Positions 6,065 to 59,945 of a stretch of DNA of 64,000 nt are shown here, in pieces. The notes beneath the pieces are model-generated. The model was not told the origin of the DNA. It searched no databases and was given only the letters and a program-made list of their open reading frames with translations. How positions within the stretch are numbered: the stretch's first letter is position 1; each line of letters begins with the position of its first letter. The DNA is from Octopus sinensis (lineage: Eukaryota), in contig NC_043023.1 in the NCBI RefSeq assembly GCF_006345805.1, positions 7,750,001 to 7,814,000 on the forward strand, written 5' to 3'. The translations under genes were made by a program, and so were the position numbers.

Positions 6065-6164
6065 NNNNNNNNNNNNNNNNNNNNNNNNNNNNNNNNNNNN
6101 NNNNNNNNNNNNNNNNNNNNNNNNNNNNNNNNNNNNNNNNNNNNNNNNNNNNNNNNNNNNNNNN
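6065..6164. other. Assembly gap (100 N)
   Basis: Run of exactly 100 N, a standard scaffolding placeholder. Confidence 0.99.
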
Positions 6165-12243: not shown

Positions 12244-12367
12244 TAACAATAACAACAAGGCCAAATTTATTTAATTAGTTAATGAACATTTATAAAAATT
12301 AAACACCAAGATAAAAAGATGTCATTTTCTGCCTCTTTTGTCCATATATCCTGTCTTTCTTTTACAG

Positions 12368-12822
12368 ATGTCAAATTGACAATACCCATTCATCGGTTTG
12401 CCAATGATGAGGTTATCAACAACTACAGCAGAAGCGAACCTGTCAATGACAATCAGAATAGCACTGACAACGACGGCAATGATGACAACAACAGCAACAA
12501 GACTATAGACAACCAACCTGAGTCCAACACTGATACCTGTGTATTCCGAAGTGTGTCGAATGAGGAAATTTACGGGATACAAATGACGGTATCACGCATC
12601 CAGGGTCAAAACAGCGATTTGACGATGAGAAATTACATTCTGTCCTGCACACTGAATGAATATGGTGTGGCCAAATCAATGGAGATCCCTGTTACGAAGG
12701 ACATGAGTGCTGTGGAAGCCCTGGAGCAGTTCATGGGGAAAAAGGTGAGCTTGGATATTCAACTGAAGTTGTATGACATATTGGACCAGCCCATTCTTTC
12801 ACCTGTTCCCATTCAAAAGAAG
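12368..12822 (+). CDS. ZP-domain secreted protein, coding exon 2 (ZP-N, N/D-rich insert, linker, start of ZP-C)
   Basis: Polypyrimidine acceptor TCTTTCTTTTACAG|AT is phase 1, matching exon 1. The frame is open: VKLTIPIHRF...DTCVF...ILSCTL...LKLYDILDQPILSPVPIQKK. Donor AAG|GTATTA is phase 0. Confidence 0.82.
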
Positions 12823-12937
12823 GTATTACAGCTTTGGTCTTTGCTATTTTTTAATTTTGTCTACTTGTTTCAGTCGTTGGGCTGTGGCCATGCTGGGGCA
12901 TTACTTTCAAGGGTTTAGCAGGAACAAATAAAAAACA

Positions 12938-13753: not shown

Positions 13754-13788
13754 TTAAGATATAAAACTCTATTTTCTCTCTTTTGCAG

Positions 13789-14190
13789 GTCCGTCTCATT
13801 GGAAAATCTAAGAATAATGTAACAGGTCTATTAACTAACAATTGTGTAGCCAAGTCGGACAAGAATACACAATACAGAATCCTTAAAGCTGGCTGTGGAG
13901 ATGGGTTTATATTCCACTCAGACGATGGCTTCACTACAGATGGTTCGACAATTACAAGTCCATTCTTCCGAATGTTTAAATTGATGAATTCTGATAGACT
14001 CACCTTCCAGTGCACGTTCACCATCTGCAACGGTCACTGCGATGGAAACAGCTGCTTGAAGCAACGATTCAAGCGTGACGCTCCGCAACTCTCTGGAGAC
14101 CTGTTTAATGTTGATGACGATCCTGACGCCGCTGACAATGAAACGACTGAAGCTATGACCTCCACCTATGACCTGCAGCAAGAGACGTAG
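13789..14190 (+). CDS. ZP-domain secreted protein, coding exon 3 (ZP-C, furin site RFKR, stop)
   Basis: Acceptor TTTTCTCTCTTTTGCAG|GTC is phase 0. It encodes six Cys in the molluscan ZP-C pattern (NNC...AGCGDG...FTT.G..ITSPFFRMF...FQCTFTICNGHCDGNSC), then KQRFKR, with TAG at 14188-14190. Confidence 0.88.
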   Translation, partial: VRLIGKSKNNVTGLLTNNCVAKSDKNTQYRILKAGCGDGFIFHSDDGFTTDGSTITSPFFRMFKLMNSDRLTFQCTFTICNGHCDGNSCLKQRFKRDAPQLSGDLFNVDDDPDAADNETTEAMTSTYDLQQET

Positions 14191-18071: not shown

Positions 18072-18232
18072 CAGGAGTGGCTGTGTGGTAAGTAGCTTGT
18101 CTACCAACCGCATGGTTCCGGGTTCAGTCCCACTGCGTGGCATCTTGGGCAAGTGTCTTCTGCTATAGCCCCGGGCCGACCAATGCCTTGTGAGTGGATT
18201 TGGTAGACGGAAACTGAAAGAAACCTGTCGTA

Positions 18233-18281
<49 letters not shown>

Positions 18282-18784
18282 TTGTGTGTCTGTGTTTGTA
18301 CCCCTAGCATTGCTTGACAACCGATGCTGGTGTGTTTATGTCCCCGTCACTTAGCGGTTCGGCAAAAGAGACCGATAGAATAAGTACTGGGATTACAAAA
18401 GAATAAGTCCCGGGATCGAGTTGCTCGATTAAAGGCGGTGCTCCAGCATGGCCGCAGCCAAATGACTGAAACAAGTAAAAAGAGAAAAAAAAGAGAAAGA
18501 GTAACAGATACAAGCAACATCTCTTGGTACTGCACGGAAATGAAATGTGGTACCCTGTACCTTGGACACTGGCATAGTATTCTTTTATTCTTTTATTCGT
18601 TTCAGGCATTTGATTGCGGCCATGCTGGAGCACCAGCTTTTAGTCGAGCAAATCGACCCCAGGACTTATTCTTTGGAAGCTAAATTACGGGGACGTAAAC
18701 ACACCAGCATCGATTGTCAAGTGATGTTGGGGGGACAAACACAGATACAGAAACGTATACACACACATACATACATTCATATAT

Positions 18785-19156: not shown

Positions 19157-19932
19157 ATATGTATGTATATATGTATGTGTATGTGTATATGTTTGTGTGA
19201 CTGTGTTTGTCCCTCCCCTACCAACATCGCTTAACAACTGATGCTTGTGTGTTTACGGCCCTGTAACTTAACGGTTCGGCAAAAGAGACCGATAGAATAA
19301 GTACTAGGCTTACAAAGAATAAGTCTTGAGGTCGATTTGCTTGACTAAAGGTGGTGCTCCAGCATGGCTGCAACCAAACAACAGAAGCAAATAAAAGAGT
19401 AAAAGATTAATAAAAGAATATTTATCACCAAGGCAATTTGCATGATTTAAATAAAAATGAGCTGAGAGAAAACACACTCAGAGTAGCCAGTATCTTATGT
19501 TTCAACAACATAGACGAATACAGGCGCAGGAGTGGCTGTGTGGTAAGTAGCTTGCTAACCAACCACATGGTTCCGGGTTCAGTCCCACTGCGTGGCATCT
19601 TGGGCAAGTGTCTTCTGCTATAGCCCCGGGCCGACCAATGCCTTGTGAGTGGATTTGGTAGACGGAAACTGAAAAGAAGCCCGTCGTATATATGTATATA
19701 TATATATATGTATGTGTGTGTTTGTGTCTCTGTGTTTGTCCTCCTAGCATTGCTTGACAACCGATGCTGGTGTGTTTACATCCCCGTCACTTAGCGGTTC
19801 GGCAAAAGAGACCGATAGAATAAGTACTGGGCTTACAAAAGAATAAGACCCGGGGTCGATTTGCTCGACTAAAAGGTGGTGCTCCAGCATGGCCGCAGTC
19901 AAATGACTGAAACAAGTAAAAGAGTAAAAGAG
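18072..19932. mobile_element. Cluster of four SINE-A copies (+, -, +, +)
   Basis: Copies at ~18072-18500 (+), ~18590-18965 (-), ~18955-19410 (+) and 19523-19932 (+). Confidence 0.9.
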
Positions 19933-23248: not shown

Positions 23249-23807
23249 CTCTCTTCTCTTTCTCTTTTCTCTTTTACTTGTTTCAGTCATTTGACTGCGG
23301 CCATGCTGGAGCACCGCCTTTTAGTCGAGCAAATCGACACCGGGACTGATTCTTTGTAAGCCCAGTACTTATTCTATCAGTCTCTTTTGCCAAACCGCTA
23401 AGTTTACTCTTTTACTTGTTTTAGTCATTTGACTGCGGCCATGCTGGAGCACCGCCTTTTAGTCGAGCAAATCGACACCGGGACTGATTCTTCGTAAGCC
23501 CAGTACTTATTCTATCGGTCTCTTTTGCCGAACCGCTAAGTGACGGGGACGTAAACACACCAGCATCGGTTGTCAAGCAATGATAGGGGGACAAACACAG
23601 ACACACAAACATATACACACATATATATATATATACATATATACGACAGGCTTCTTTCAGTTTCCATCTACCAAATCCACACACAAGGCTTTGGTCGGCC
23701 CGAGGCTATAGCAGAAGACACTTGCCCAAGATGCCACACAGTGGGACTGAACCTGGAACCATGTGGCTGGTTAGCAAGCTACTTACCACACAGCCACTCC
23801 TGCGCCT
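23249..23807 (-). mobile_element. SINE-A with an internal duplication of its 3' region
   Basis: The 3' segment (TTTTACTTGTTT...CCGCTAAG) is present twice before the body. Confidence 0.88.
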
Positions 23808-26844: not shown

Positions 26845-27430
26845 GGGTGGGGAGAGGACCTCGGAAAATTCACAAGATCCGAGCTTTTCCCTCATAACTT
26901 TTAAGAAAATGAGGATTTTTCAATGAAATTTTATAGAAATACCATTCAAAGGGCATACATTACGATTATAAAGAAATTTGTAGGGAAACTCTTTTCCAAG
27001 GGGGTGGGGAGAGGATTTCGGAAAATTCACAAAATTCGAGTTTTTCCCTCATAACTTTTAGGAAAATGGGGTTTTTTCAACGAAATTTTATATAAATACC
27101 TTTCAAATGGCATACATTACGATTATAAAGTAAATTGTGGGAAAAATGTTATATACTTATAAAGTAAATTGTGGGAGGGGACTTCGGAAAATTCACAAAA
27201 TCCGAGTTTTTCCCTCATAACTTTTAAGAAAATGGGGTTTTTTCAACGAAATTTTATATAAATACCTTTCAAATGGCATACATTACGATTATAAAGTAAA
27301 TTGTGGGAAAAATTTTATATACTTATAAAGTAAATTGTGGGAGAGGACTTCGGAAAATTCACAAAATCCGAGTTTTTCCCTCATAACTTTTAGGAAAATG
27401 GAGTTTTTTTTCAATGAAATTTTATATAAA
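26845..27430. repeat. ~4 tandem ~150-180-bp units
   Basis: CGGAAAATTCACAA...TTTTCCCTCATAACTTTTA...CATACATTACGATTATAAAG repeats. A fragment also lies at ~41125-41190. Confidence 0.8.
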
Positions 27431-27683
27431 TTCTAGTTGAATGGAGGTAATCGATTGGTTAAAATTGCCGAAATACTCGGATTTTCAGACGAAATATCTT
27501 ACAAACTATAGAATTTTCACGTAATGTAAATTTTGAACGGGGTATAGCTATGAAAAGAGCCCAGTAAAATGGGTAGTACCAATACAAAATGGGTGAGGAA
27601 GAAAAGTTGCCAACAGGTGGTTACACGAAATTGCACTCAATACTTTAAAGAGTGTCTTCTACTATAGCTTCGGGCTGACCGAA

Positions 27684-28278: not shown

Positions 28279-28446
28279 AGCAGGAGTGGCTGTGTGGTAA
28301 GTAGCTTGCTTACCAACCATATGGTTCCGGGTTCAGTCCCACTGCGTGGCATCTTGGGCAAGTGTCTTCTGCTATAACCCCGGGCCGACCAATGCCTTGT
28401 GAGTGGATTTGGTAGACGGAAACTGAAGAGGCCTGTCGTATATATG

Positions 28447-28518
<72 letters not shown>

Positions 28519-28748
28519 ATATATATGTATATGTGTGTTTGGGTGTCTGTGTTTGTCCCCCAAGCATTGCTTGACAACCGATGCTGGTGTGTTTACGTCC
28601 CCGTAACTTAGCGGTTCGGCAAAAGAGACCGATAGAATAAATACTGGGCTTACAAAGAATAAGTCCCGGGATCGATTTGCTCGACTAAAGGCGGTGCTCC
28701 AGCATGGCCGCAGTCAAAATGACTGAAACAAGTAAAAGAGTAAAGAGT
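28279..28748 (+). mobile_element. SINE-A, near full length
   Basis: Runs from CAGGAGTGGCTGTGTGGT to AAAAGAGTAAAGAGT. Confidence 0.92.
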
Positions 28749-28759
28749 GTCTTCCTCTT

Positions 28760-28899
28760 TTCCCAGAAACATGACTAGACAGTTTCAAAATGAAAGTGAA
28801 ACAAACTTTCTCAGAAATTATTAGTGTTTATATGTGCACACACACACACAACAGTTACGCATATATCCGTTTCCTAGAACTGATTAACTTTCATTTTCC
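28760..28899. promoter_or_regulatory. Cluster of 3 GAS (TTC-N3-GAA) and 2 IRF-E/ISRE-like motifs
   Basis: GAS motifs: TTCCCAGAA 28760-68, TTCTCAGAA 28808-16, TTCCTAGAA 28871-79. IRF-type motifs: AATGAAAGTGAAAC 28789-802 and ACTTTCATTTTCC 28887-99 (GGAAAATGAAAGT on the minus strand). Confidence 0.6.
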
Positions 28900-29159
28900 A
28901 GTAACGCCTCACTTTAGCTTCTGACTACCGTCGTTGTTTCCACACACGAAGACATTCCTTCTTCACTTTGAACACGATTCAAACTAGACACAACACAACC
29001 AAATAACCAAAACAAATACAGTTTATTTTTCTTCTTCTTGTGTTTATTATCGTCAAAGTGAGTTCCACAACCGTCTTTTGGATTGCGACAGAGATCGAAA
29101 CCTAAATGTTGATACCACTCAAACTGCTGAATATTTCGTCCAGAGATTGAATTTAAAAA

Positions 29160-29510
29160 ATGTTGCTAAAACCATCTGAAATCCGTTATACACAACATAT
29201 GATTCGCGGCTCCTTCCAGATTCGTCACCGGGCTCCCTATCCATATATTGGTGATCTTGTAGATTCTATTGTGGCAGGTAGTACCAAGATCAGTAGTATT
29301 CCAAAGATAGTCGTCGTTTTACACGAAGGAAATTATTATTCTCTCGATAACAGGAGACTGTGGGTGTTTAAACAACTAGAAGAAAAAGGTTATTGCTCCG
29401 AAATAGATGTATATGTCTCGCATGAAAATTTAGTAGGAAATTCTAAGTTCTCTACTATAACAGAAGGGAAGACTATTGATGTCTGTGGATGCGTCCGGAG
29501 AGCGATTTGA
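29160..29510 (+). CDS. Intronless 116-aa ParB/Sulfiredoxin-like domain protein
   Basis: Non-repetitive ORF with an AAAAA-ATG context and normal composition. The motifs LKPSEIRYTQ, IPKIVVV and YYSLDNRRLWVFKQL resemble the ParB/Srx-fold small proteins recalled from bacteria and marine invertebrates. The family call is from memory of the motif, not from a search. Confidence 0.75.
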   Translation: MLLKPSEIRYTQHMIRGSFQIRHRAPYPYIGDLVDSIVAGSTKISSIPKIVVVLHEGNYYSLDNRRLWVFKQLEEKGYCSEIDVYVSHENLVGNSKFSTITEGKTIDVCGCVRRAI

Positions 29511-30051
29511 TAAGATCGATGACTGGCATTTGGAACAAGCTCACCTCAGTAATTTTTGGAAGTTATGTGATTAATGCAGCTGTTCTTGGGATCCTGTCAG
29601 AAGAAGAACCAAAATTTCTTATTAGTGTTTAAGATAAAAATGAAAAAAAAAAAACAGAAAAAAAGTATCTTTATCGTTTCTTTGGTGAAAATCAATGCTT
29701 TACTGATTGACTTCTCTTTAAATATAGAACAAAACCCTGCAATTTCTGTTTATTTTGATTTTATACATTTTCTACCAAATTTTCCATGGCAAGACGGGTG
29801 GAAGTCTTTCCTTTTTCCATGGCAAGACGGGTGGAAGTCTTTCCTTTTTCCGTTGTTTCCTCAACTTTTTTAAAATTCTATTTTCATTTAATTTTTATAT
29901 AATCTTTTGTGATTTCCCTGTATTAACTTCTGTGAAGAATTTGCTTTCAGTGTTGTTATCGACTTTAATTAGACTGGAAAAAAAAATACAGAAAAAATGT
30001 CAAAATCTTCAACCTTGGGGACTTTTTGTCCCGATCCTCCCCTTCACATAT

Positions 30052-30094
<43 letters not shown>

Positions 30095-30300
30095 CTCACA
30101 CATATATACATACGCTAACTACAAGTCTGTTGAATCATAAAAACGAACAAAGTAATTTTCAATAAAACTTCAGAATTTTCCGCTTGTCCCATTCCTCCCT
30201 CTCTCGTAAACACACGCGTATATTATTACTGCAAAGATATCAACAAAATTTCTCTCCTTTTTCTTAAATACCACTTTCAGATACAAAAAAAAAAGGGCAT

Positions 30301-43333: not shown

Positions 43334-43498
43334 GGCGCAGGAGTGGCTGTGTGGTAAGTAGCTTGCTAACCAACCACATGGTTTCGGGTTCAGTCCCACT
43401 GCGTGGCATCTTGGGCAAGTGTCTTCTGCTATAGCCTCTGGCCGACCAAAGCCTTGTGAGTGGATTTGGTAGACAGAAACTGAAAGAAGCCCATTGTA

Positions 43499-43532
<34 letters not shown>

Positions 43533-43784
43533 AATATATATATATATATGTATGTGTGTGTATATGTTTATGTGTCTGTGTTTGTCTATCTAGCATTGTT
43601 TGACAACCGACGATGCTGGTGTGTTTACGTCCCCGTCACCTAGTGGTTCGGCAAAAGGGACCGATAGAATAAGTACTGGGCTTACAAAGAATAAGTCCTG
43701 GGGTTGATTTGCTCGACTAAAAGGCAGTGCTCCAGCATGGCCACAGTCAAAATGACTGAAACAAGTAAAAGAGTAAAGAGAGAG
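43334..43784 (+). mobile_element. SINE-A, full length
   Basis: Family A consensus. Confidence 0.92.
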
Positions 43785-57092: not shown

Positions 57093-57153
<61 letters not shown>

Positions 57154-57158
<5 letters not shown>

Positions 57159-59945
57159 CCTTAAAATAGCCCGAAGGCCGGCCATGCTGGGGCACCACCG
57201 CTGAATGAGCTACACTAGTTTGTGAATCCACCTCTGATACGTGGCACTTGATCAACAAGGGAGTTCGATGCTGCTGCCCGCATCCGTGTCTCCTGTCGTG
57301 AGGTAGGTCATCTGGGACTCCCAACAAGAAGAGATCCAGTTTAGTTTTAAAGAAACCCACATCCACACCATGTAAGTCTTTCAGGCATTTAGGGAGGATG
57401 TTAAAGAGCTGTGGTCCTCTGAAACCCAAGCTGTTGCAGTATCTGGACCTGTATTTTGATGGTGATGTTGGAATCCTTGGCACCACGCAGCGGCGCCCCG
57501 TTCTGCGGTTGGAGTAACTTTGAATGCCAAAGTTTGGGACAAGACCCTCCAGGATTTTCCAGATGTATATCACTGCATATCTCTCCCGCCTCCGCTCCAG
57601 GGAGAAGAGGTTTAATACCTTCAGTCTTTCCCAGTAGCTGACATTTTGCATTGAGACGATTTTCTTTGTGTAGCTTCTCTGAGTTGCTTCGAGTTCTGCT
57701 GTTTGTTTTATATTGTGTGGTGACCAAAGTTGGGAGCAGTAGTCCAAGCGGCTGAGGACAAATTTTCCATAGGACCATCAGTGTCTCCTTCTCTCTGTTC
57801 TGAAAGTTCGGAGAATCCATCCAGCTAGCCGTCTGCATTTTATCACCAGATTAGCAATATGCATTTGGAAAGATGCATCATTGCTCATGTCAATGCCCAG
57901 GTCACGCACTGATTTTGACTCAGGGATTGCAATTCTTCCTGGGCCAGTGTATCCAGTCTTCACGTCATTTACCTTTGTGTGCCAGTAGCGCAGGGCCTGG
58001 AACTTACCTGCATTAAACTGCATGTTGTTGTCCTCAGCCCACCTGTATATTGTGTCCAGCTCATGTTGCAGATGCGCAATATTTTCAGGGTTTTGTATTG
58101 CGTGGGAGACTTTTGTGTCATCTGCATAGCTAGCAAGGGTGGTCATCGTAGCAACTGAAGGCATGTCTGAAAGGGCCACTATGAACATCAGTGGCCCCAA
58201 GACAGTGCCCTGTGGGACACCGCTTGTTATTTGCGTTTCCCTGGAGGTGGCTCCATTGCTCACAACTGCCTGTTTTCTGTCTTTTAGGAAGTTGTGCAGC
58301 CACTCTCCAAGTTTCCCGCCTATGCCGAGACCACGCAGTTTGTGACAGATCATACCATGGTCGACTTTATCAAAGGCTTTTGCAAAGTCAAGATATATTA
58401 CATCCACATTTGAGCCATTTAGTAGCTGTTTCAACACCCAGTCATAGTGTTGCAGGAGCTGTGTTAGGCAGCCTCTACCTGGTCGAAATCCATGCTGGGT
58501 GTCAGACAGTAAGTCATTTTCTTCAAGGAACATGATTAGTTTCTTACGGACTATTCGTTCCATGACTTTGCTGATGTGTGAGGTCAGAGAGATAGGCCTA
58601 TAATTTTTAGCATCTGCTCTGCTACCTCCCTTATGGATAGGGCATATTACCCCCTCTTTCAGTTTGACTGGGAGCTTACCACTTGCAAGAAAGCTCTGAA
58701 AAAGAAGCTGTAGCGGTTTTGCAAGGGCTCGTTTGCACGATTTGAGAAGGATCGCTGGGAATCCATCAGGTCCAGCAGCTGAGTTGTGTCAATCTCATCA
58801 ATGGCTAGTGTGATATCATCTTCTTCGATGTTGATGTACTCAATTTTTGTCTCTTTGGTCGCTGGTAAAGTGGCAAAGAATTCTTCTGGGTTGTTTACTT
58901 GCCTGTGTCCTAGAGGTGTAGTGAACACACTTTGGAACTGTTCATTCAGTATTTCACTTATCCTCGTGGGATTTCCTGTGAGAGAGCCATCTTTTTGGAA
59001 GAGAGGTCCTATTCTCTGGTGCACTGTGGCTGTCTCTTTGGCAAACTTAAAGAAAGCTTTAGGGTTTGATTTATATTTTCTATTACCCAAGCTTCTTTAT
59101 CTGCTCTCTCCTTTTCATGGGACTGATGTAGACTTTTCTCAGTTTCCATTAGCATTCTTTCGAGCCGAGATCTCACCACTTTGGTGTGCTTGCTCAGGCG
59201 GTTTGCAATCCTTGTCCGTCGTCTCATAAGAATCCTCCTTTCTCTAGGGATCCTGTTTTTGTTCTTGTGTGTGCTGGCCCTGCACATTGGGACATATTTG
59301 TCACATATGGCTTGTATTATGGACATGAAGTGTTTGTGTTTCATGTTTATGTCCGTGTGTGGAGAGACATTCAGGCCAATCCTGTTTGAGGATCTCTTTC
59401 TCAATCGACTTCCAGTTGGCTTTATGAAAGTTTAAGTGGAGAGATGGTGGGTGCTTCGTATAGGCTGTGTCTGCGGGGGCTTTTGTTCCAACATAGACAG
59501 CTCTATTATGTTGTGATCCGAGATCATTGTCGGCATCACATTAACATTATGGATAATATCCATATGTTTGTAAAGCAGAGATCCAGTATTATCTGCCCTT
59601 GTGGTTGCAGAACTATTTGCTCCATGAAAGAGGTATTTGTGAGATGGAGCAGGGACTCCACCTGTGCCTGCTGATGGTGTTGTCATCCCTGGGAGCATCT
59701 GCCCCCCAGGCCATTCCACATTGGGGAGGTTAAAGTCACCCATGAAGAATACACTGTTGTGCTGTTTCAAGGTTGGTGAGGACTCCTCCTATTTTGTTAG
59801 GCAGTCTTCAAACATGCCTGAGTGTTTTGGGGCGCGTCTGGTGGGCGATATGTAGTGCATATGACGATATTCAGTTGTCTTATGTGTACAATTTGAGTTT
59901 CACATACTGAGTTTGAATATGACAGCAGGACCTGGGGCGTGAGGT
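57154..59945 (-). pseudogene. 5'-truncated, frameshifted CR1-type LINE (partial APE endonuclease plus RT)
   Basis: RT motifs QHGFRPGRGC, YLDFAKAFDKVDH, SGVPQGTVLGP and YADDTK; endonuclease remnants GDFNLP and SDHN; C-terminal LERRRERY. It is split over several frames and both ends sit in (TA)n. Confidence 0.93.

Follow-up and report, generated by a model that had tools for sequence, protein, structure and literature searches.

A putative STAT/IRF-type regulatory module upstream of a small ParB/Srx-fold gene in Octopus sinensis

Does the dense cluster of interferon-style motifs at positions 28760-28898 of a 64-kb stretch of the Octopus sinensis genome (hereafter the window) regulate the small open reading frame downstream of it and, if so, in response to what? 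An initial annotation had interpreted three STAT-type GAS palindromes and two IRF-type motifs as an interferon-style enhancer, and the open reading frame as a ParB/Srx-like antiviral effector that might cleave nucleotides. The explanation we favor, with a probability of about 0.6, is that the cluster is a STAT/IRF-type, signal-dependent regulatory module of this gene, whose product is predicted to adopt the ParB/Srx fold. Much of the earlier reading survived analysis, in that the cluster is real, is conserved, and precedes a gene for a ParB/Srx-type fold; the module did not prove to be family-wide, being absent from the three loci of bivalves and the one of Ciona that were compared.

A GAS site was defined as TTCN3GAA, with TTCYNRGAA or TTCCNGGAA as the form preferred by STAT; an ISRE/IRF-E was defined by direct GAAA repeats, GAAANNGAAA, with the core AANNGAAA. 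All five motifs lay exactly where they had first been placed (Table 1), and the gap between the last motif and the ATG at 29160, previously put at about 260 bp, measured 261 bp. The two sequences conforming to the ISRE/IRF-E definition were GAAAGTGAAA (28792-28801, plus strand) and GAAAATGAAA (28889-28898, minus strand), the latter reading TTTCATTTTC on the plus strand. The motifs were arranged as GAS-ISRE-GAS at 28760-28816, where the ISRE-like element began 21 bp after GAS 1 and ended 5 bp before GAS 2, followed by GAS-ISRE at 28871-28898; a (CA)n run occupied 28837-28850. The TTCYNRGAA form was found in all three GAS sites of the cluster, as compared to 0 of the 11 other TTCN3GAA sites in the window. 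No canonical TATA box was present in 28899-29159, and scans of the region for bacterial-type promoters and terminators and for tRNAs returned no features. Two other classes of element were considered for the palindromes and rejected: a heat-shock element requires TTC-N2-GAA spacing, whereas the cluster sites have N3, and GAS 2 lacks the GGAA core of an ETS site.

Table 1. Features of the locus, in positions of the window; L002 is the Logan contig that bears a close relative.
Feature	Position	Strand	Remarks
GAS-type palindrome 1, TTCCCAGAA	28760-28768	.	Fits TTCYNRGAA; ATG 400 bp downstream
ISRE/IRF-E-like element, ATGAAAGTGAAAC	28790-28802	+	Includes GAAAGTGAAA at 28792-28801
GAS-type palindrome 2, TTCTCAGAA	28808-28816	.	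ATG 352 bp downstream
GAS-type palindrome 3, TTCCTAGAA	28871-28879	.	ATG 289 bp downstream
ISRE/IRF-E-like element, GAAAATGAAAGT (minus-strand reading)	28887-28898	-	GAS 3 lies 7 bp away
Proximal promoter and presumed 5' UTR	28899-29159	+	Alignable with L002
Degenerate IRF-E, CAAAGTGAAG (minus-strand reading)	28961-28970	-	L002 has an intact CAAAGTGAAAG at the aligned position
Intronless CDS, 116 aa plus stop codon	29160-29510	+	Intact; predicted single-domain ParB/Srx-fold product resembling Tox-ParBL1
3' flank, presumed 3' UTR	29511-30040	+	Aligns with L002

The window contained 14 TTCN3GAA sites; the resulting density, about 0.026 per 120 bp, comes near the earlier hand estimate of 0.04. 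It also contained 36 GAAANNGAAA sites, the majority of them within copies of a SINE-like repeat. The cluster was the sole spot in the window with three GAS sites in 120 bp and the sole spot with five motifs in 140 bp. Order-1 and order-3 Markov models were each used to simulate 1500 sequences of 64 kb; three GAS sites fell within 120 bp in 0.27% of the former set and 1.1% of the latter. For the palindromes alone, these rates (0.3-1% per 64 kb) imply on the order of a hundred or more such spots per genome by chance, assuming a genome of a few gigabases. The composite of three GAS and two IRF (GAAANNGAAA) sites was observed in 0 of 1500 simulations and would be expected about once or less per genome of that assumed size. 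The cluster is non-random and real.

The window is rich in repeats, and microsatellites flank the unit. In a comparison internal to the window, all copies of the SINE-like repeat upstream of the cluster stopped aligning at 28744-28748, and 28749-30089 had no match elsewhere in the 64 kb. A high-copy repeat carrying the motifs had been named at the outset as an observation that would overturn the enhancer reading; within the window, the cluster instead lies outside the local high-copy repeat and is single-copy.

To what extent is the cluster shared with relatives? The loci compared came from O. vulgaris, O. sinensis (two loci), Argonauta hians, L002, and L010; the comparison drew on these relatives rather than on the true orthologous promoters. 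In 105 kb of octopod DNA, TTCYNRGAA occurred 16 times, every time inside a promoter module of the ParB-like family: 13 sites fell in 3.0 kb of upstream sequence versus 3 in the 102 kb elsewhere (a small background, at 105 kb in total), and those 3 belonged to duplicates of this promoter module. The sites represented five lineages of paralogues from Octopus and Argonauta and mostly adjoined an IRF/ISRE-like RTGAAAGY. Upstream palindromes of this form were present in L001, L002, L003, L007, L008, and L010, while the sequence around them could not be aligned between paralogues. Their position also recurred, falling between -258 and -293 in the window, L001, L002, L003, and L007: L002 had the identical 9-mer of GAS 3 at -293, L003 a palindrome of the same type at -260, and L007 two of them, at -287 and -258; the position in L001 was likewise -260, taking the first unit of a 21-bp array there as the reference. 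One module in L007 and L008 was located just 53-92 bp before the ATG, and at that distance it may sit within the 5' UTR. The GAS-ISRE-GAS sandwich recurred in L010, where the module precedes the ATG by about 670 bp, and, in degraded form, in L001.

RTGAAAGY, a pattern defined after several loci had been seen, was no more than 25 bp from a GAS site at six loci (the window, L001, L002, L007, L008, and L010); L003 had the palindrome and no RTGAAAGY. The sequence ACTTTCATTTT, from the 28887-28898 element, was common to L002 and the proximal module of L007, and the full GAAANNGAAA was retained only in the window among the loci compared. Contig L002 extends upstream no further than the (CA)n run, so that the cross-species comparison of the cluster covers only GAS 3 and the second IRF motif.

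The YNR refinement and RTGAAAGY were chosen after some loci had been seen, so the enrichment is partly post hoc. The clean tests are L007, L008, and L010 for TTCYNRGAA and L010 only for RTGAAAGY. L007 and L008, both fetched after the TTCYNRGAA rule was fixed, each carried such a site within 300 bp of the ATG, for which the chance per locus is about 0.013-0.037 (from the background count and the base composition of the window). At the level of sequence, the comparison showed the palindrome, mostly with a paired IRF/ISRE-like site, to be a conserved hallmark of octopod promoters of the family. The conservation proposed as a check on the enhancer reading was borne out, palindromes with an adjacent IRF/ISRE-like site being found upstream of family genes in O. 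vulgaris, O. sinensis (two), Argonauta hians, and L002; since the motif pair recurs in this way, the region probably does function as a promoter that responds to signals. The bivalve loci L004-L006 and the Ciona locus L012 had neither GAS enrichment nor the GAS and RTGAAAGY composite, which rules out the module as a trait of the whole gene family and makes it a feature of the octopod genes.

The downstream reading frame has an in-frame TAA at 29154-29156, two codons before the ATG. The window, L002, and O. bimaculoides each have it in intact form, 116 aa long and with the family-invariant residues kept; the 64 kb contained no second copy. Identity to L002 was 81% upstream (28853-29159), 82% in the CDS, and 74% in the 3' flank; for the CDS, dS was 0.35 and dN/dS 0.62. 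The stop codon is followed by an A-rich stretch. The 3' flank contains a 33-bp direct duplication (29780-29845) that L002 lacks, and the first AATAAA occurs at 30161. On comparative grounds, the reading frame is a real gene. It belongs to a large eukaryotic family (2230 cluster representatives) that is hugely expanded in bivalves; tandem duplication of family genes was seen in octopod loci, where paralogous proteins only about 50% identical still had the motifs upstream. Across 35 sequences, P5, S6, N64, R66, L67, and G103 were invariant and R65 was at least 90% conserved. Pfam, NCBIfam, and PADLOC scans of the protein and its relatives yielded no meaningful family, and Pfam scans of 20 longer members yielded one HSP70-type fusion and otherwise nothing.

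The AlphaFold (AF2) model of the 116-aa protein had a pLDDT of 94.5 and a pTM of 0.87, and in Foldseek the top 50 PDB matches and nearly all named BFVD matches were ParB, Noc, KorB, Srx, SbnI, SerK, or ParB-like proteins. The match was moderate (TM about 0.5; best E of 1.7e-3 in the PDB and 5.6e-4 in BFVD), and the top matches were exclusively of the ParB/Srx fold, in agreement with the ParB/Srx-like call first made from sequence. Sequence methods were silent: a ParB-type Pfam model matched 0 of 35 family members at E up to 1, and sequence and profile searches of the PDB gave only noise (a MerR regulator, a sulfotransferase). In the model, residues D63 N64 R65 R66 lie directly before and at the start of a helix (64-75) that follows strands 50-55 and 58-61; by position only, this D-N-R-R would be equivalent to the phosphate-binding motif of ParB/Srx proteins.

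The likeness to the CTP-binding N-terminal domain of ParB/Noc and to sulfiredoxin lies in fold and topology, with a beta-hairpin followed by a helix that opens with an Arg-rich motif, and in a conserved polar residue on the N-terminal strand. A ParB clamp consists of an N-terminal CTP-binding domain, an HTH DNA-binding domain, and a dimerisation domain; the octopus protein differs from this partition CTPase in ending at residue 116, without HTH or dimerisation domain. Sulfiredoxin has its catalytic Cys in a conserved Gly/Cys-His-Arg motif; none of the 35 members had a Cys at that position, where the motif is D-N-R-R. Because characterised ParB/Srx domains are mainly NTP-binding or phosphotransfer modules, the proposal of a nuclease is the weakest part of the initial annotation. 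The product would most likely be an NTP-binding protein with phosphotransfer or hydrolytic activity.

Another counterpart is Tox-ParBL1, defined by a predicted ParB fold with an N-terminal S/T and an [NT][RT][RT] motif and reported from metazoans, other eukaryotes, and bacterial polymorphic toxins (Zhang et al. 2012, PMC3482391). Judged by this published definition rather than by alignment with type members, the octopus family fits the predicted Tox-ParBL1: it combines the predicted fold with a conserved N-terminal Ser (S6, a residue missing in classical ParB) and with N64 R65 R66, the counterpart of the arginine motif of ParB. The octopus protein differs in standing alone and looking cytoplasmic, with neither a toxin-delivery region nor an adjacent immunity gene. 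A bacterial relative found by pattern scan (L011) had 29% identity (tblastn E of 7e-10), and a small uncharacterised ORF, DUF7660, comes after its gene. Bacterial ParB-like domains of the toxin type (Tox-ParBL1) appear to be the ancestors of the family.

The proposed mechanism is as follows: the cluster would act as the upstream regulatory module of the small intronless gene, each of its three TTCYNRGAA palindromes being partnered by an IRF/ISRE-like GAAA repeat (RTGAAAGY). A STAT dimer would bind the palindromes after JAK-type activation and an IRF-family factor the GAAA repeats, the binding specificities of the cephalopod proteins being taken from those of other animals. Their joint input would make transcription signal-dependent, as in vertebrate GAS and ISRE promoters and in STAT-dependent stress and infection genes of insects; the most likely trigger would be an immune or stress stimulus. 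The product would be a 13-kDa stand-alone ParB/Srx-fold domain, in which the invariant N-terminal Pro-Ser and the Asp-Asn-Arg-Arg at the start of the central helix would occupy the nucleotide-phosphate-binding positions of ParB and sulfiredoxin.

The module resembles the GAS and ISRE promoters of vertebrate interferon-stimulated genes (IRF1, GBP type) in having TTCYNRGAA-form palindromes close to GAAANNGAAA-type IRF/ISRE sites, with several copies in about 140 bp, a few hundred base pairs upstream of a small effector-type gene; it differs in that the sandwich and its spacings are known, as sequence, from octopod loci only. We know of no interferon in cephalopods. In Drosophila, consensus STAT sites have been shown experimentally to make vir-1 and the Turandot genes JAK/STAT-inducible in infection or stress, without interferon. 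Those genes, like the octopus gene, are small, lineage-restricted, of unknown biochemical function, and have consensus STAT sites in their promoters; their proteins are unrelated to it, and the octopus case is a prediction. The Drosophila promoters lack an IRF-type partner site because insects, to our knowledge, have no IRFs. As for the factors themselves, pathway figures from an O. vulgaris haemocyte transcriptome list Stat-1 and IRF3, as pathway entries rather than as detections of each protein (PMC4199593), and signalling related to IRF and ISRE, along with an IFN-like system, is described for oysters (PMC5557890, PMC8218723, PMC6685332).

Could the pattern have arisen without any regulatory role? 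A chance coincidence of short, AT-rich motifs is very improbable. The motifs are indeed short, they were chosen post hoc, and three GAS sites alone would recur at a hundred or more spots in a genome of the assumed few gigabases; the composite, however, was absent from the 1500 simulations, the palindrome type also precedes genes of four other, independent paralogue lineages and, duplicated modules aside, is missing from the remaining 102 kb, and both of the out-of-sample loci L007 and L008 carry it. Hardly more probable is that the motifs came with a repeat or mobile element, or that the reading frame is a dead retrocopy whose conservation reflects recent common descent. The repeat-rich setting with its microsatellites, a SINE-like repeat abutting the cluster at 28748, an intronless gene with an A-rich stretch past its stop codon, and the similar L002 identities (upstream, CDS, and downstream alike) would all suit such an origin. 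Against it, the repeat copies end short of the cluster, no other copy of the unit or of the reading frame exists in the window, the reading frame is intact in three sequences with its invariant residues, and paralogues of about 50% identity keep the motifs in promoters that no longer align.

A different alternative accepts a genuine conserved promoter element but has it serve a different end under other factors: a Blimp-1/PRDM1-type zinc-finger protein might, for instance, recognize the AGTGAAAGT-like sites and some unrelated dimeric factor the palindrome, and the outcome would then be tissue-specific, developmental, or general stress expression rather than an immune, interferon-style response. 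We consider this less likely than the STAT/IRF reading. Conservation speaks for constraint rather than identifying the binding proteins, and L003 retains the palindrome without the GAAA site; in addition, PRDM1 and IRF sites overlap, STAT-like palindromes are targets of repressors of the BCL6 type in vertebrates, and JAK/STAT has further roles in invertebrate development and tissue repair, all of which count in its favor. What tells against it is the form of the sites and the character of the gene. The palindromes that were seen first, five in all across the window, L001, and L003, each had the TTCYNRGAA form, mostly extended to TTTCnnnGAAA, and the repeated pairing of the palindrome with GAAA repeats is the classical GAS and ISRE signature. 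The gene is fast-evolving (dN/dS 0.62), tandemly duplicated, related to toxin domains, and hugely expanded in bivalves, a profile typical of conflict and immunity genes. We retain the STAT/IRF-type, signal-dependent module as the preferred reading.

In the literature searched, we came across no account of a cephalopod promoter regulated by STAT or IRF; a search for the ParB/Srx family in metazoan immunity returned mostly irrelevant work, with the exception of Zhang et al. (2012). It is possible, and we suggest it tentatively, that the module is the first recognisable STAT/IRF-driven, interferon-like cis-regulatory signature in cephalopods and that the toxin-derived ParBL1 family serves as inducible intracellular immune effectors. 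If so, the pair TTCYNRGAA and RTGAAAGY could be used to probe sequence for the rest of a cephalopod 'ISG-like' regulon. Should the gene prove not to be inducible, the locus would still be a clear case of a promoter element long kept among paralogue promoters that can no longer be aligned. Cephalopod innate immunity is poorly known, and the module offers a testable entry point to the JAK/STAT and IRF targets of octopus, as well as a short signature that can be counted genome-wide. It also suggests a candidate role, that of inducible effector, for a large and uncharacterised eukaryotic family of ParB/Srx-fold proteins.

Three STAT-type GAS palindromes (TTCN3GAA) interleaved with two GAAA-repeat IRF motifs lie upstream of the intronless ParB/Srx-like gene of the window, and all five motifs described in the initial annotation were confirmed, with their positions, in the sequence. 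Between the end of the cluster and the ATG lie 261 bp, and an in-frame TAA closely precedes that ATG. TTCN3GAA occurs 14 times in the 64 kb and GAAANNGAAA 36 times, the latter mostly within SINE-like repeat copies; the cluster is the sole instance in the window of either a three-GAS or a five-motif grouping. All three of its palindromes fit TTCYNRGAA, the narrower form preferred by STAT, whereas the 11 TTCN3GAA sites elsewhere in the window all depart from it. Among simulated 64-kb sequences (1500 for each of two models), a three-GAS cluster arose in 0.27% (order 1) or 1.1% (order 3) and the composite of three GAS and two IRF motifs in none.

Features of the window, in window positions
Feature	Position	Strand	Remark
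GAS 1, TTCCCAGAA	28760-28768		sequence read
IRF motif 1, GAAAGTGAAA	28792-28801	+	sequence read
GAS 2, TTCTCAGAA	28808-28816		sequence read
GAS 3, TTCCTAGAA	28871-28879		sequence read
IRF motif 2, TTTCATTTTC	28889-28898		sequence read; GAAAATGAAA on - strand
IRF-E, degenerate	28961-28970		intact in L002
In-frame TAA	29154-29156		just 5' of ATG 29160
ParB/Srx-like ORF	29160-29510		116 aa
33-bp direct duplication	29780-29845		perfect; 3' flank of gene; not in L002
SINE-like repeat	28280-28748		no tRNA by ARAGORN
Further SINE-like copies	18231-18488, 19687-19928, 23403-23643, 43497-43780		>25 other places in all
Tandem repeat	26850-27444		unit ~166 bp, ~3.5 copies; TTCAAYGAA in each unit, GAS-like, outside TTCYNRGAA
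ORFs matching Pfam VERL_C, ZP-C (E 2e-15, 5.6e-33)	12319-12915, 13783-14187	+	probable exons from a VERL-like gene with a zona-pellucida domain, ~15 kb 5' of the cluster
LINE-type fragments	57124-59770	-	coding region broken across several ORFs
Reverse-transcriptase ORF	57781-58563		within LINE fragments; RVT_1, E 6e-24
Assembly gap	6065-6164		100 N

A rival reading, named as refuting in the initial annotation, is that the region is a high-copy repeat carrying such motifs everywhere. The window is Octopus-like DNA of ~37% GC, rich in microsatellites, SINE-like copies and LINE reverse-transcriptase fragments. The SINE-like copies, in both orientations and 72-95% identical, often carry a GAAACTGAAA-type motif and thus inflate the count of IRF-like sites. 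Every alignment of the upstream SINE-like repeat ends at 28744-28748, and within the window no second copy was found of the ORF or of any part of 28749-30089; as far as these 64 kb show, the motif region is single-copy.

Motif conservation upstream of relatives was a check named beforehand. The first three loci (L001-L003) were examined before the search rule (a TTCYNRGAA site no more than 450 bp upstream) was fixed, and further loci were fetched thereafter. The Logan contig L002 is alignable with the window from 28853 onward; GAS 3 is identical and the adjacent ACTTTCATTTT retained, while GAS 1, GAS 2 and IRF motif 1 fall outside the comparison because the contig ends at a (CA)n run. The O. 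vulgaris paralogue (L001) presents TTCTAGGAA, 10 bp, ACTTTCAC and a TATAAAA box, with the palindrome at -260 counted from the first unit of a 21-bp tandem array. This array (L001 2872-3126, 12 copies) duplicates the start-codon region and so accounts for the 49-residue repetitive N-terminal extension annotated before the usual first Met of the family. An O. sinensis paralogue (L003) has TTCTTAGAA at -260. Another (L007) comprises two tandem gene copies with a period of ~3.5 kb, each with TTCYNRGAA sites at -287, -258 and -53, and a third, truncated promoter copy further upstream. In Argonauta hians (L008), TTCCTAGAA was found at -92, and two nearby duplications of the module were also seen; a module as close to the ATG as -53 or -92 may fall inside the 5' UTR. 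The Logan contig L010 carries TTCTTGGAA, 10 bp, GTGAAAGT, 5 bp and TTCTCAGAA ~670 bp upstream of the ATG, sharing with window 28760-28816 a GAS-ISRE-GAS sandwich. RTGAAAGY occurs within 25 bp of a palindrome in every lineage except L003; upstream of the family genes examined in bivalves (three loci) and Ciona (one locus) the module was absent.

Across a 105-kb sample, TTCYNRGAA was counted 13 times in 3.0 kb of upstream sequence as compared to 3 times in the remaining 102 kb (all three in duplicated promoter modules). Neither the window and L002 nor the two L007 copies count as independent of each other here. Both the refinement to YNR and the choice of RTGAAAGY draw partly on loci used to test them, and only L007, L008 and L010 provide clean tests. 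Outside the motifs no alignment was obtainable among paralogue promoters, which argues that the motifs were retained by selection and not by recent descent alone. On these sequence comparisons we consider it highly probable (about 85%) that the module is a conserved composite cis-element of the octopod ParB/Srx-like gene family.

The assignment of the gene to this fold was borne out: an AlphaFold2 model from a 35-sequence alignment was confident (pLDDT 94.5, pTM 0.87), and its best 50 Foldseek matches in the PDB were all of the ParB/Srx fold (best E 1.7e-3, TM ~0.5), including Noc, CTP-bound ParB, KorB, sulfiredoxin, SbnI and the serine kinase SerK. A viral structure library agreed, its matches being phage and giant-virus ParB/Sulfiredoxin proteins. 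A profile search returned 2230 cluster representatives (E up to 1e-3), the named members being uncharacterised proteins from many bivalves, an annelid, Ciona, a foraminifer and a dinoflagellate; no Pfam family for a ParB/Srx-like domain was found among the members scanned. The family is recognized by Pro-Ser-Glu-Ile-Arg-x-x-Gln (N-terminal) and Asp-Asn-Arg-Arg-Leu-Trp segments, with P5, S6, N64, R66, L67 and G103 invariant across 35 sequences. In the model, Asp-Asn-Arg-Arg begins the helix after a beta-hairpin, where ParB and Srx carry their arginine motif, an equivalence proposed from topology. The family matches the published description of Tox-ParBL1, a divergent ParB-like family with a conserved N-terminal Ser/Thr and an [NT][RT][RT] motif, found in bacterial polymorphic toxins and several eukaryotes including metazoans (Zhang et al. 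2012, PMC3482391). The octopus protein lacks the Cys of sulfiredoxin and the HTH domain of ParB. The label 'nuclease' is not supported by the present analysis; NTP-dependent phosphotransfer or hydrolysis would be the safer putative activity.

The closest relatives of the window protein are an O. bimaculoides protein (78% identical), the L002 product (71%) and the L001 product (50%). Relative to L002, dN/dS is 0.62 (dS 0.35); the gene is therefore fast-evolving, under weak purifying selection. A second octopus clade (P0232, P0234, P0258, P0259, P0260; loci L003 and L007) bears repetitive tails rich in Pro, Thr and Ser; their last four residues, Cys-Val-Ile-Leu, form a prenylation signal of the CaaX type, which suggests membrane anchoring. 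Some bivalve members, including P0069 of Mactra antiquata, have two or three tandem domain copies, and in one the domain is joined to an HSP70-12-type ATPase. The family genes of L007, L008 and Ciona (L012) lie inside larger genes predicted on the opposite strand (NUDIX_2, RNF220, acyl-CoA oxidase). A pattern scan of prokaryotic genomes turned up a single bacterial relative, encoded in a Thermomicrobiales MAG (L011): a stand-alone protein of 101 aa retaining Asp-Asn-Arg-Arg-Leu-Trp. A small ORF overlapping and 3' of it matches Pfam DUF7660 (E 1.6e-23); the two (L011 3007-3557) could form a toxin-immunity-like pair.

We infer that STAT and IRF proteins read the module, with signal-dependent induction that is probably immune- or stress-related. 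The binding specificity of both factors, on which this reading draws, is established in other animals. It draws also on the window gene's profile, typical of conflict genes, on the pathway figures of an O. vulgaris haemocyte transcriptome study, which list Stat-1 and IRF3 (PMC4199593), and on IRF/ISRE-related signalling described in abstracts of oyster studies (PMC5557890, PMC8218723, PMC6685332). The chief alternative has different factors binding this conserved element for a non-immune programme. The GAS plus ISRE logic and the ParB/Srx fold are already known, and Tox-ParBL1 was already predicted as a family with eukaryotic members in 2012 (PMC3482391); no description of an octopod pairing of a conserved GAS/IRF module with a ParB-like family was found in the literature. 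This pairing offers a sequence-defined handle on a possible cephalopod STAT/IRF regulon.
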